From positions 8,702,591-8,745,929 of the forward strand of contig NC_069005.1 of NCBI RefSeq assembly GCF_001194135.2: 43,339 nucleotides of DNA, given 5' to 3'. Origin of the DNA: Octopus bimaculoides. Taxonomy: Eukaryota. The translations under genes and the position numbers were made by a program. Positions 5,160 through 32,917 of the stretch are shown in pieces (position 1 is the stretch's first letter; each line of letters opens with the position of its first letter). A model generated the notes under the pieces. That model was not told where the DNA came from and did no database searches. It saw only the letters and a program-made list of their open reading frames with translations.

Positions 5160-5510
5160 TCATACATATATATTAATACACCGGCTTGTTGTATATAGAC
5201 CTGTCTTCGTCTTTTGTTTTTTTTAAAATTCCAACTATATAGGTCATCAGCTGTCGGACGCCGACGAAGGGAAATAACCCTGAAATCCGGATACGTTCGT
5301 GCTGCAGATCGAGGTGAGAGGGATAACTTCCCTTGGCAAACAGGACACAGTCGTGTGTCGATAAGCCAGCTGGAGGAGATGTCCTCCTGGGGCTAAAAGC
5401 AACAGTAACATCCACCCCTAGGGGTCAGCCACACTTAAGTGGCAATATACTACACTTTATCGTGCAGTTACTGTTAATACTTCATTTAGAGAATTAACAT
5501 TGCTTATATA
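5160..5510 (+). mobile_element. Putative Penelope-like pLTR/retrozyme fragment carrying HHR-1, running into an assembly gap
   Basis: Island clearly richer in GC and CpG than its flanks, containing the hammerhead and several hairpins. No RT or GIY-YIG ORF is visible, so the class is inferred from hammerhead architecture. Confidence 0.5.
5248..5304 (+). ncRNA. Type I minimal hammerhead ribozyme motif (HHR-1), Penelope-like element/retrozyme style
   Basis: Stem I CGGACG 5255-5260 pairs with CGTTCG 5294-5299, extended by CAGC 5248-5251/GCTG 5301-5304. Core CCGACGA 5261-5267; stem II AGGG-aaataa-CCCT 5268-5281; GAAA 5282-5285; palindromic stem III ATCCGGAT 5285-5292; predicted cleavage after A5293 (AUA). 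Confidence 0.85.
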
Positions 5511-6005
5511 NNNNNNNNNNNNNNNNNNNNNNNNNNNNNNNNNNNNNNNNNNNNNNNNNNNNNNNNNNNNNNNNNNNNNNNNNNNNNNNNNNNNNNNNNN
5601 NNNNNNNNNNNNNNNNNNNNNNNNNNNNNNNNNNNNNNNNNNNNNNNNNNNNNNNNNNNNNNNNNNNNNNNNNNNNNNNNNNNNNNNNNNNNNNNNNNNN
5701 NNNNNNNNNNNNNNNNNNNNNNNNNNNNNNNNNNNNNNNNNNNNNNNNNNNNNNNNNNNNNNNNNNNNNNNNNNNNNNNNNNNNNNNNNNNNNNNNNNNN
5801 NNNNNNNNNNNNNNNNNNNNNNNNNNNNNNNNNNNNNNNNNNNNNNNNNNNNNNNNNNNNNNNNNNNNNNNNNNNNNNNNNNNNNNNNNNNNNNNNNNNN
5901 NNNNNNNNNNNNNNNNNNNNNNNNNNNNNNNNNNNNNNNNNNNNNNNNNNNNNNNNNNNNNNNNNNNNNNNNNNNNNNNNNNNNNNNNNNNNNNNNNNNN
6001 NNNNN

Positions 6006-6325
6006 GGTGTCAAAACAGGAAGTGTGTGTAAGGGAAGACAATTCTGTGGGTTTTATACTCTTTAGTTGGAGTTCTGGCCTCTTTGTCAACAGGAAGTTTA
6101 TGTCTGTTCTTAGAGAAACAAGAAGTAAATTTATATGTATTTCAATGGGTAGGCGAGAGAAGGGAATGTGGTCACCAAGGAGTTTGTATGTTAAGAACCA
6201 TTTGAAATTTCTCTATATTTCTCTTTTTGTAGAGAAAGAATATAAAACCCACAGAATTGTCTTTCCTTACACAAATTTCCTGTTTTGACACCACACTTCC
6301 TGTTTAACACATAAACTCTCAGCCT
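6006..6325. mobile_element. Foldback/MITE-like element with 52-bp inverted repeats
   Basis: 6006-6057 is the reverse complement of 6241-6292 at 49/52 positions. Sub-repeat ACAGGAAGT recurs. The left end is hidden in the gap, so no TSD is visible. Confidence 0.7.
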
Positions 6326-6798
6326 TTTTTAAACACAACATGATCCTTAATTCCATGCATCCTAATCTATCTAACAATTATCTACATGGATTACCATTGA
6401 ACTTTAAAAACTCAAGGACAATATAATGTATTGGTATATTTATTTTTTTTTATATATTTTTTATATTTTTGTAAAAAAACATTATTTTCATTTCCCGATC
6501 TTCTGCTTTGTGAACCTTGTCTGAATATTTCCTTTCATCTTTTCTGTCATATGAAAGATCAGAGATGGAAAAAAAAAATTAAGAAGGGATGGAATGAGTT
6601 ATAAGCTTTGAATAAATACTATCTGCTGTGTGTGCTTAGTAGTATATTTTTTTTGTGTGTGTGTGTGAATGCCTGAGTATATTTACATTCACATGTACAT
6701 ATATGATTGTTTACATATGCATACGCCCATATAGTTTCATTTTATGGCTGGTTATGCTTTGTATATTTATATGTTCCAATATGGCTCTTAAATCAACC

Positions 6799-6844
<46 letters not shown>

Positions 6845-7111
6845 ATATATGTATATATATTCTTATATATATACACACATACACACACAAATATGTATGT
6901 ATATATATGCATGTGTATATATGCTTGTGTGCATATGTATATGTGTGCATTTTTTGTGCACGCATATATGTGTGTATGTATATTTGTGTCTATATGGATT
7001 TCTGTATATATAGATATACGAAAATACTTATATATCATTCATATTGAAAATACATATATTTATATTTGTACACACACACACACACATGCACGCGTGCATG
7101 CACACACACAT

Positions 7112-7143
<32 letters not shown>

Positions 7144-8264
7144 CTACAGAAATGCTATTATCCCACTTTGTAAGCAGTTTTTGACACTGACCAAAGAACA
7201 CCATTGAAAATATCCAGACTTTCGAGACAAGTACATAATTAATAGCAGAATAACAGAACACTAACACAACAACAAGAATAACAAAATCATCATCAACAAC
7301 ACTACACACAATAACAACATGAGCCAACGCCACCAACCTGTAGGCTGGCTTCATACAACAATAAACATCACAGAATGCTACTTTTCTTAAAAGTGAATGC
7401 TTTTGCTTCTCTACCTGACCCAACTTTCCTAATTTACCAAATATAACAACATCATATGATGATGATGATGATGATGATGATGGTAATGATGATGGGAAGC
7501 ATCATCATCACCGTCACTTTCTTTAGTGTCGTTGTTGTCGTCATGATCGTTGTCACTCCGTCGTCGTGGTTGTCATGTTTGTCATTGTCACTAGGCAGAC
7601 CACAATCATAATATCAGATCATAACCATCCATTGTCATCAGCCGGTCATTATTTACAAAACGGTAAAAGCAAATTACTGTACCAATAAATAAATAAATAA
7701 ATAAACAAATAAATGCCTAAATATATGAATATATGGTGTCTGTCTGTGTGTATGTGTGTAAATCTGTGTGCATATATACAGCCATACACACACACACACA
7801 TAGTGACAGATAACAAAAAATATATATATGCACACTCACACACAAACACATGTATATATGTATGTAAATATGTATACTTATATCAATGTGTGTGTGTAAT
7901 ATATATATATATATATATATNNNNNNNNNNNNNNNNNNNNNNNNNNNNNNNNNNNNNNNNNNNNNNNNNNNNNNNNNNNNNNNNNNNNNNNNNNNNNNNN
8001 NNNNNNNNNNNNNNNNNNNNNNNNNNNNNNNNNNNNNNNNNNNNNNNNNNNNNNNNNNNNNNNNNNNNNNNNNNNNNNNNNNNNNNNNNNNNNNNNNNNN
8101 NNNNNNNNNNNNNNNNNNNNNNNNNNNNNNNNNNNNNNNNNNNNNNNNNNNNNNNNNNNNNNNNNNNNNNNNNNNNNNNNNNNNNNNNNNNNNNNNNNNN
8201 NNNNNNNNNNNNNNNNNNNNNNNNNNNNNNNNNNNNNNNNNNNNNNNNNNNNNNNNNNNNNNNN

Positions 8265-8309
<45 letters not shown>

Positions 8310-8696
8310 ATATATATAATATAAATATAAACTATACATAATAGATATATTTCTACTATATGTATGAGATCTTATATATATATGTATGTTTATATATATA
8401 TATATAAACTTTGATTCCACTGTGTCCTTCATTAAGAGGAGAGAAGGAAAAATCCCTGAATTCTCCTTCATTAGAGGGAGAGTAGTAAACCAAAACAAAA
8501 CCTTGCATCACCAACAAAAAAATAAAAAAAGGAGAGGAAAATATCAAAAGGAGTAAAAATTTGTTGTGTTGGTTTGTGAGTCGGTTATATCACAAGAAAT
8601 ATACTGGTTCAGATTTTATGTGGGAACATAAAAACAAGTCAATGCACACAAATATAAGCATATATTGCATGCACACACACAAACTCTCATTCCTAT

Positions 8697-31489: not shown

Positions 31490-31900
31490 GGAGTCAGAGA
31501 GAGAGGGAGAGAGAGAGAGAGAGAAAGATGGGGATGAAGAAGCAATAAAAATGAGTAGGAGAGACTACAGAGACTGAGGTATGTATGGGGGTGAGAGAGA
31601 CGTGGGTATAACTATATATAGGGAGAAATGAGGCAAAAACTGGGTGAGAGACAGACAGAAGAAATACAACAAGGACTGACAGAGATAGGAAGAGAGAGAG
31701 AGAGAGAGAGAGAGATATGGGAAAGATGAAGCACTACAAGCTGAATGAAAAAGCGCAAGAGAGAAAAAGAAAGAGGGTAAGATAGAACTTGAAAGAGAGA
31801 GACAGACAAATGAGAGAGGAAGATATAAATTGATAGAAGAAGAGAGGTGGATAGACATTGAGAGAGAGAGAGAGAGAGGGACTGAGACACAGCGAAGCAA
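31490..31900. repeat. GA-rich purine-biased low-complexity tract
   Basis: (GA)n runs embedded in about 400 bp of strongly purine-skewed sequence; mirrored by a CT-rich tract at 31280-31395. Confidence 0.85.
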
Positions 31901-32324
31901 TAGAAAGACAGGCTTGAATAAACAACATTGTTTATATAATTAGTTTGACATGCACTAATTATTGATCGGGGTTTTACTGTTTTTTTTTAATGTGTTTTTT
32001 TTTTTGGTTAATTTTATTGTGACTTTTTTTCCCTTCATTTCTTTCTGGTGCACTTTTCTAGCCATTCCCAGCAGCTAACCAATAGCATCCAGTTACATTC
32101 TACTTTATATTATATGCATTTTACAAACAATAGCACCGTTGGGGAGGGGTGGATGGGAGAAGAGGCAGGAGGGGCAAGGCTGGATTCCATCAGGCCAATC
32201 CCTGGTTCATGTCATTTATGGCAGTGAGAGCGACAAGGGAGTATCTGTCCAATTTGGATGGAACAAATACTGTGTGCACAACATAACCAGTATTTGCATA
32301 ATATTTACATTTGTTTTTGCAGAT

Positions 32325-32486
32325 ATGACTGTGTGGTAAGAAGCTTCCTTCCGAATCACATTGCTCCGGGTTCAGTCTCATTGTTTGGCACCTTGGGCAA
32401 GCGTCTTCTGCTATACTCTTGGGCCAACCAAACCCTTTTGAGTGGATTTCGTTGACAGAAACTGAAAGAAGCCTGTTGTGTATATG

Positions 32487-32521
<35 letters not shown>

Positions 32522-32730
32522 CTTTGTATCTGTGTTTCTCTCCCACCGTTGCTTGACAGCCAGTGTTAGTTTGTTTACATCCCCATAACATAGCATTTCG
32601 ATAAAACAGACTGATAGAATAGGTGCAAAGTTTAGAAAATACATACTGAGGTTGATTCATTCGACTAAAAGTGCTTCAAGGTTATGCTCCAGCATGACCG
32701 CAGTCTTATGATGGAAACAAGTAAAAGATA
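32325..32730 (+). mobile_element. SINE family B, near full length
   Basis: GTGTGGTAAGAAGCTTCC..GGGTTCAGTC..GGCACCTTGGGCAAGCGTCTT..(TA)(TG)n..GCTCCAGCATGACCGCAG..GAAACAAGTAAAAGA. Confidence 0.85.
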
Positions 32731-32813
32731 CATACAGTGATGAAAATGTTCACACATACAGACACTCTCATGCACAAAGACACGCGCACAGATATACATA
32801 TATATATATATAT

Positions 32814-32845
<32 letters not shown>

Positions 32846-32879
32846 TGTATTTAAAAGCAGCAGAAATATAACAAAAAAA

Positions 32880-32917
32880 CCGTTACTCTGAGTTTCACGT
32901 TCCCGTTCATCGGACAA
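32880..32917 (-). ncRNA. Type I minimal hammerhead ribozyme motif (HHR-2), 5' stem I arm clipped by an adjacent SINE
   Basis: Minus strand reads ttgt-CCGATGA(32913-32907)-ACG ggaa CGT-GAAA(32896-32893)-CTC a GAG-T-A-acgg. Stem III is ACTC-A-GAGT; GUA cleavage site at 32886-32884; stem I is 4 bp (T-A, G-C, T-G, T-G). Confidence 0.8.

Follow-up and report, generated by a model that had tools for sequence, protein, structure and literature searches.

Two short motifs in a 43,339-nt stretch of the Octopus bimaculoides genome (NCBI RefSeq assembly GCF_001194135.2, contig NC_069005.1, positions 8,702,591 to 8,745,929, forward strand; hereafter the window) have the layout of minimal type-I hammerhead ribozymes and share one non-canonical core. 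In both motifs, here called HHR-1 and HHR-2, the segment normally written CUGANGA reads CCGAYGA, with C in place of the uridine at position 4 (U4C), and the G10.1-C11.1 pair that closes stem II is replaced by A-U. The active site of the hammerhead owes its shape to the CUGA uridine turn, of which U4 is part, and almost all search descriptors hold U4 invariant. Judged by their sequences HHR-1 and HHR-2 are genuine members of the hammerhead lineage, and both C4 and A10.1-U11.1 were most probably already present in the source elements and inherited from them. The reading we prefer, to which we give about an even chance, is that this inherited variant hammerhead may still cleave slowly as a dimer.

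The window is microsatellite-rich with ~33% GC and contains 11 runs of N, among them those beginning at 5511, 7921, 28152, 29197 and 34714; both motifs and their immediate neighbourhood are gap-free. The gap nearest to HHR-1 begins 211 nt 3' of the motif and has an estimated length of 495 (5511-6005). The segments of HHR-1 are CGGACG / CCGACGA / AGGG-AAATAA-CCCT / GAAA / TCC.GGA / TA / CGTTCG and those of HHR-2 are TTGT / CCGATGA / ACG-GGAA-CGT / GAAA / CTC-A-GAG / TA / ACGG (coordinates in Table 1). Both follow the helix order stem I 5' strand, core, hairpin II, GAAA, stem III, UH and stem I 3' strand, and with respect to the invariant core C3 U4 G5 A6 N7 G8 A9 / G12 A13 A14 / A15.1-U16.1 / H17 both deviate at position 4 alone. 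Common to the two are C3, G8, the C at position 4, A10.1-U11.1, G12-A13-A14, A15.1-U16.1 and an NUA cleavage site. In each motif A9 is followed by an A that may pair with the U preceding G12. An alternative register of HHR-1 has this A unpaired and a G10.1-U11.1 wobble; the A-U register alone suits both motifs. Stem I of HHR-2 (TTGT/ACGG) has 4 bp of which two are G-U, and its stem II has 3 bp with A-U as the closing pair. By hammerhead numbering cleavage is predicted after A5293 in HHR-1 (AUA site) and after A32884 in HHR-2 (GUA site).

Stem III of both motifs can be closed between two copies only, not within one molecule. That of HHR-1 has a loop of zero nt, and ATCCGGAT at 5285-5292 is a perfect 8-nt palindrome. 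The stem III loop of HHR-2 (CTC-A-GAG) is 1 nt. As RNA, AUCCGGAU of HHR-1 is perfectly palindromic and ACUC-A-GAGU of HHR-2 is so save for the central A, which stands opposite A. A preliminary description of the window had listed the CCGAYGA core, A10.1-U11.1, the AUA and GUA sites, the C3-G8 pair and a tight stem III, and all of these were read at the places it gave. It had also stated that stems and flanks of HHR-1 and HHR-2 are unlike each other, which was borne out by comparison of the motifs and their flanks. The interval 5248-32917 that it assigned to the pair is a bounding box around the two motifs and nothing more.

Table 1. Positions in the window of the two hammerhead motifs, their parts and the elements in which they lie
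Feature	Position	Strand	Description or basis
HHR-1	5255-5299, outer helix 5248-5304	+	Complete minimal type-I hammerhead layout (descriptor, folding)
HHR-1 stem I	5255-5260 / 5294-5299	+	6 bp
HHR-1 outer stem I helix CAGC/GCTG	5248-5251 / 5301-5304	+	Beyond small internal loop
HHR-1 5' core CCGACGA (C3 C4 G5 A6 C7 G8 A9)	5261-5267	+	C5262 at the expected place of U4
HHR-1 stem-loop II AGGG-AAATAA-CCCT	5268-5281	+	4 bp, 6-nt loop, A10.1-U11.1 closing
HHR-1 3' core GAAA, loop-less stem III and cleavage triplet	5282-5293	+	Sequence reading
Element carrying HHR-1	5178-5510	+	Single-copy in window, CpG-rich, structured; runs into gap at 5511
HHR-2	32917-32880	-	Minimal type-I hammerhead layout (descriptor, folding)
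HHR-2 5' core CCGATGA	32913-32907	-	C at position 4
HHR-2 GAAA	32896-32893	-	3' core
73-nt insertion with HHR-2 at its 5' end and a 35-nt T-rich tail	32845-32917	-	Alignment with copies of the short interspersed nuclear element (SINE)
Host SINE, tRNA-derived, old, 5'-truncated, broken by the HHR-2 insertion	32690-33010	-	Alignment

The window was scanned on both strands with a type-I descriptor that required a stem I of at least 4 bp, a stem II of at least 3 bp, A15.1-U16.1 plus a stem III of at least 2 bp with a loop of 0-8 nt, and H17. With the CCGANGA core two matches were obtained, HHR-1 and HHR-2, which account for two of the four CCGANGA heptamers in the window. The same descriptor found no match in the window for the canonical CUGANGA core, for 32 other single-substitution cores or for 359 composition-matched permuted cores, and 1000 dinucleotide shuffles gave no match with either a C4 or a U4 core. 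A scan of the window for type-III hammerheads was also negative. Relaxed short descriptors raise the false-positive rate in general (PMC3088659), and two chance look-alikes might have been admitted by relaxing the core; since alternative cores, permuted cores and shuffles all gave zero against two matches for C4, the motifs are non-random and we regard such an accident as practically negligible.

As a positive control the descriptor recovered a motif of Mytilus californianus with CUGAUGA, a GUC/GAC stem II (G10.1-C11.1) and the palindromic GAAACGCGCGUC. This motif, on the minus strand of L005 at ~20350-20420, reads CUGAUGA-GUC..GAC-GAAA-CGCGCG-UC; it has the canonical minimal type-I form and probably belongs to the mussel motifs from retrozymes or Penelope-like elements (PLEs) in PMC7229834. 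A canonical minimal hammerhead ribozyme (min-HHR) in Schistosoma mansoni was recovered once stem III was relaxed to one pair beyond A15.1-U16.1. With the same descriptor the C4 core had no match in a total of ~220 kb of control DNA. CTGANGA heptamers are over-represented in the window (26 observed versus 14 expected), for which CAT/ATG-type repeats are the suspected source. One CTGATGA lies directly upstream of HHR-1 at 5244-5250 on the minus strand, with no hammerhead layout around it.

Standard searches do not see the two motifs. The Rfam hammerhead models had no match in the window at gathering score and none at E<=10 on slices of 111-371 nt around the motifs; on the whole window at E<=10 no hammerhead was listed, most of the output being 'miRNA' matches to microsatellites. 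The descriptors published for hammerheads of PLEs prescribe 'cuganga' (PMC8557442), and the earlier statement that searches requiring a canonical core would miss these motifs is therefore correct. Hammerhead variants of cephalopods are not described in the searchable literature. No report of a U4C hammerhead in animals was found in the literature covered, outside of which lies the survey of PLE variants by Lunse et al. 2017, reportedly the largest of its kind. As to natural U4C hammerheads, for which the preliminary description had pointed to the literature, one is described, in a viroid (Ambros & Flores 1998, cited in PMC3088659). The C4/A-U core probably represents a novel variation within a familiar kind of hammerhead and not a new class, U4C having this viroid precedent.

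The origin of the two deviations can be judged from their sequence context. If both copies had been canonical (U4, G10.1-C11.1) at insertion and had mutated later, the shared core would be a product of independent decay. Two copies only have been seen, transitions are the commonest substitutions, and C11.1-G12 is a CpG so that a change of C11.1 to U is favoured. Such decay would however need the same three substitutions twice, including a T-to-C change that makes a CpG in a CpG-depleting genome. The ratio of observed to expected (o/e) CpG over the whole window is 0.30, whereas both motifs lie in DNA that is unusually rich in CpG, and the CpGs of the motifs are otherwise intact (by a count made by eye, 7 in the 45-nt HHR-1 and 4 in the 38-nt HHR-2). 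C4 and G5 together form a CpG, and deamination yields canonical U4 from C4, not the reverse. It is unlikely that C4 arose by decay because a change of U4 to C must make a new CpG in a CpG-poor window, contrary to the mutational bias.

The second deviation points the same way. A10.1-U11.1 is two substitutions away from G-C and both copies carry both of them; a change of G10.1 to A that restores a Watson-Crick pair in both motifs looks compensatory. Of the 10 stem pairs that can be compared between HHR-1 and HHR-2, seven are different at both bases. Because the same deviations are found in both copies with most stem pairs differing, independent decay after insertion is unlikely, and we consider it very improbable as an account of the shared core. 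The view of the preliminary description that random decay is unlikely gains from the CpGs retained in a window of such low o/e and from the mutational bias against U4 changing to C. If C4 and A-U were inherited, at least one octopod retroelement lineage spreads a hammerhead with a variant core. Old C4 copies will come to look like canonical U4 because C4-G5 is a CpG, and family consensuses must allow for this CpG decay.

We propose that HHR-1 and HHR-2 would be solo copies of retroelement-borne, dimer-dependent minimal type-I hammerheads, belonging to PLEs or their non-autonomous derivatives. The deviations would have been passed on by the source elements and would not be post-insertion damage, so that one or more octopod retroelement lineages would propagate the variant. 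Two motifs, either in a tandem transcript or on two RNAs, would pair their palindromic stem III strands and swap their stem I strands. This pairing would yield two complete three-way junctions, each cut after A17. Dimer-dependent minimal type-I hammerheads, as which the preliminary description had already classed the motifs, are known from PLEs and retrozymes, and cleavage as a dimer is established for minimal motifs of this type (PMC4209133, PMC7229834).

Folding predictions agree with this scheme for HHR-1. The minimum free energy (MFE) structure predicted for a homodimer of the HHR-1 45-mer is the exact double hammerhead, at -31.5 kcal/mol versus -26.6 kcal/mol for two monomers (2 x -13.3); its stem III is formed over 8 bp between the two molecules, and their stem I strands are exchanged. 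Cleavage is expected to be slow at best since the CUGA turn has C4 in place of its uridine. As a lead, loop II of HHR-1 (AAAUAA) and the internal loop that follows 6 bp of its stem I resemble the tertiary contact of the Schistosoma type-I hammerhead. Such a contact in HHR-1 could offset a weakened core.

Several results weigh against a still active, PLE-borne hammerhead. The hammerhead dimer of HHR-2 has a predicted energy of -8.0 kcal/mol versus -19.2 kcal/mol for a competing fold and is thus ~11 kcal/mol worse. In the MFE structures of the HHR-1 monomer and of the HHR-2 monomer and dimer, C3-C4-G5 is paired to a CGG close by, in competition with the active structure. Cotranscriptional deep mutagenesis of a tertiary-stabilised hammerhead gave low activity for all single mutants of the CUGA turn (PMC9901934). 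The G10.1-C11.1 pair, absent from both motifs here, is strongly conserved in the min-HHRs of PLEs (PMC4209133), and among stem pairs A15.1-U16.1 alone exceeds it in conservation (PMC3088659). No reverse-transcriptase or GIY-YIG frame was found near HHR-1 or HHR-2, and the assignment to PLEs is for this reason by analogy only. Two single-copy motifs provide no family, consensus or true covariation, because the window holds no second copy of either motif or its flank and 69 kb of cephalopod DNA from rhodopsin loci (O. vulgaris, O. bimaculoides and an ENA cephalopod contig) contains no copy of either element and no hammerhead of any core type. A MAFFT alignment of HHR-1 with HHR-2 misplaced stems II and III, and two sequences give no real covariation. 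Finally, PLE insertion in vitro is independent of hammerhead cleavage, catalytic hammerhead mutants leaving it unimpaired (PMC11167929), and a dead motif could therefore still spread.

Much of this would suit motifs that were inherited but dead. A lineage crippled by U4C and by the loss of G10.1-C11.1 may have kept transposing, with pseudo-ribozymes copied passively; Naiad PLEs thrive without canonical hammerheads (PMC8557442). On the other hand all core positions but C4 (C3, G5, A6, G8, A9, G12-A14, A15.1-U16.1, H17) and the three helices are intact in both motifs with no stem sequence shared, which is unlike the outcome of long relaxed selection. The identical pair of deviations in both motifs suggests a tolerated state. 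Moreover, the natural U4C viroid hammerhead functions in vivo, its activity being lower in vitro and sufficient in vivo (Ambros & Flores 1998, cited in PMC3088659). We judge passively copied, inactive motifs to be rather unlikely, and less probable than slow cleavage as a dimer.

Of the earlier interpretation as a whole, the dimer-type minimal hammerheads, their being missed by canonical searches and the improbability of decay stand. Its 'two families' of 'dispersed repeats' and its 'lineage-wide' variant are not established by motifs that each occur once in the window and not at all in the 69 kb of cephalopod DNA. Both hammerheads found in the window (2/2) carry the variant core, and this core is for that reason probably common among the hammerhead motifs of this genome, although two motifs, which possibly come from related elements, are slender evidence for it.

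The surroundings of HHR-2 are those of a short insertion. The 73-nt block is placed between the conserved ...GAAACTGAAAGAAGCC of the host SINE and its internal (TA)n tract, which the T-rich tail abuts. The block looks like an insertion because it is absent from all three SINE copies with which it was compared, two in the window and one from O. vulgaris. Stem I pairing ends exactly at the insert boundary, which suggests that HHR-2 was truncated within stem I. We also considered whether C3-C4 might be SINE flank joined to a hammerhead truncated in its core; this is unlikely since a 4-bp stem I plus C3 would need chance. PLEs carry a hammerhead near their 3' end and have an insertion bias to microsatellites, (TA)n being named for the Naiad clade (PMC8557442), and the min-HHRs of animal genomes are for the most part solo motifs of truncated PLEs (PMC4209133). 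An insert as short as this, placed at a TA microsatellite and with its hammerhead near the 3' end, fits these published habits. HHR-2 would then be the 5' end of a heavily 5'-truncated retro-insertion of 73 nt at the (TA)n tract of an older SINE, a reading as a truncated copy that is drawn solely from the context of the insertion.

HHR-1 lies in a different setting. The element around it is readable for at least 330 nt; its 5' limit at ~5178 is an estimate from the end of TA-rich sequence, and its 3' end falls in the 5511 gap. The segment 5240-5400 has a GC content of 0.54, as compared with 0.44 over the whole readable unit, and a CpG o/e of 0.87, and belongs to the part of the window where CpGs are densest. 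Over 271 nt starting at 5240 the folding z-score is -3.6, with none of 200 shuffles as stable. The motif would be the head of a young, CpG-rich, highly structured element of at least 330 nt, the 3' part of which was lost in the assembly gap. This element could be the terminal region of a PLE or a retrozyme-like unit. At 5240-5510 it contains a chain of short perfect hairpins (AGGGA-TAACT-TCCCT, GACACA-GTCG-TGTGTC, GGAGGA-GATG-TCCTCC, CCCCTAGGGG and GCCAC-ACTTAA-GTGGC) and a 9-bp long-range pair AACAGTAAC/GTTACTGTT; the chain had no match in Rfam.

The hosts of the motifs might also be of another kind, HHR-1 being the first unit of a tandem array of non-LTR (long terminal repeat) retrozymes in the 5511-6005 gap and HHR-2 part of a composite SINE subfamily like Schistosoma Sm-alpha, in which a hammerhead comes after a tRNA-derived head; neither would then be a truncated PLE copy. 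A stably folding, non-coding HHR-1 element resembles retrozyme RNAs of ~170-400 nt (PMC7229834), short-read assemblies are often interrupted at tandem arrays, and HHR-2 directly follows a SINE head. Yet no likeness to 5180-5510 is found beyond the gap, nor any repeat of it in the readable sequence of the window. A hammerhead as an integral part of the SINE consensus, as in Sm-alpha, is not borne out by the three SINE copies compared, all of which have no 73-nt block, and the SINE head next to HHR-2 has lost its own 5' part. We consider this pair of hosts improbable.

Compared with PLE min-HHRs (PMC4209133), HHR-1 and HHR-2 have the same type-I layout with a near-absent stem III, a palindromic 15.2-16.2 and the need for a dimer, and also the short stem I (4-6 bp), the A after A9 and the occurrence mostly as solo motifs from truncated copies. 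The position of HHR-2 at a (TA)n tract agrees with the microsatellite insertion bias of PLEs (PMC8557442). They differ from PLE min-HHRs in having C4 for U4, A10.1-U11.1 for the 'highly conserved' G10.1-C11.1, and a possible pairing partner for the A after A9. Furthermore, no pseudo-long terminal repeat (pLTR) or RT (reverse transcriptase)/GIY-YIG frame lies near them and a multi-copy family is not demonstrated.

The HHR-1 element shares with metazoan non-LTR retrozymes (PMC7229834), which have been linked to PLEs (2026 preprint 10.64898/2026.07.22.740005), that it is small, non-coding and strongly structured with a type-I hammerhead at its head, and amphibian retrozymes also have motifs with a weak stem III that act as dimers (PMC7229834). 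Non-LTR retrozymes form tandem direct repeats of ~150-450 bp, each with a type-I hammerhead, whereas the HHR-1 element has no visible tandem copy before the gap that follows. It also differs from them in its variant core and in its GC content, which in the 5240-5400 segment, though not over the whole readable unit, exceeds the value of below 45-50% found in retrozyme repeats.

Two natural hammerheads with altered cores are closest in kind. The viroid U4C hammerhead has the identical substitution at the identical core position; it is a variant of a type-III, tertiary-stabilised ribozyme of an RNA replicon (PMC3088659), whereas HHR-1 and HHR-2 are genomic animal repeats with a second deviation at 10.1-11.1. 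The U3-A8 covariant of Schistosoma PLEs (PMC4209133, PMC3088659) is likewise a non-canonical core spread by a retroelement lineage, with ~1,300 matches that are missed by standard descriptors. It differs from the present case in that base pairing is preserved in U3-A8 and its activity is established, whereas C4 alters the uridine turn without a compensating partner.

If a whole animal lineage spreads working C4/A10.1-U11.1 hammerheads, the sequence requirements now accepted for the best-studied small ribozyme are too narrow, and censuses of hammerheads, PLE motifs and retrozymes undercount in cephalopods and perhaps elsewhere. C4 could then serve as a natural means of preventing the cleavage of monomers. 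A wider proposition is that octopods or cephalopods hold abundant retroelement families with C4 and A-U hammerheads that self-cleave as dimers and are invisible to CUGANGA and Rfam searches, and that C4 may strengthen an inactive monomer fold so that only multimers cut; we offer this as a speculation that we ourselves doubt. If the motifs are dead, retroelements keep a hammerhead scaffold without catalysis, which bears on the role of the ribozyme for PLEs.

Further searches concerned possible relatives of the two elements. Positions 5361-5411 of the HHR-1 element match 5576-5626 of an O. bimaculoides rhodopsin flank (L002) over 51 nt with 78% identity (BLAST E 4e-4; local score 43 versus a shuffle maximum of 29), with no hammerhead adjoining. 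By its sequence this may be an old relative of the HHR-1 element. Translated reading frames across HHR-1 and HHR-2 had no homologues. When the HHR-1 frame was used in a full HMMER scan, the result was three weak multi-stretch matches to translated tandem repeats, which were judged spurious. Ten reading frames of the window had no exact match in the protein collection, where the references carried a stop codon so that this may be a format artefact. Exact patterns of HHR-1 and of the octopod SINE had no match in a metagenome collection, which therefore is without octopus DNA.

Other repeats were noted in the window. Right after the gap that ends the HHR-1 element, 6006-6292 is an unrelated element of ~285 bp with terminal inverted repeats of ~55 bp (GGTGTCAAAACAGGAAGTGTGTGTAAGGGAAGACAATTCTGTGGGTTTTATA ... 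reverse complement) that looks like a miniature inverted-repeat transposon. Diverged copies of the octopod SINE with internal (TA)n/(TG)n are present at 32335-32640 (+), 33320-33510 (-), 19563-19760, 9185-10017 and 26917-27007 in addition to the host copy at 32690-33010 (-), and the same family occurs in O. vulgaris (L001:19342-19744 and 20158-20498) with ~72-75% identity. A second dispersed repeat family has at least four copies in the window (41400-41620, 35356-35580, 18234-18430 and 27318-27785) and is 81-89% identical to L001:22504-22705 and 24118-24260 of O. vulgaris. The window and the O. vulgaris rhodopsin-locus DNA thus share SINEs and other repeats at 72-89% identity. A short reading frame at 12040-12094 (+) ending in ...VHQGSILSSYLFIIIS resembles a non-LTR reverse-transcriptase motif and is probably a decayed fragment of a long interspersed nuclear element (LINE).

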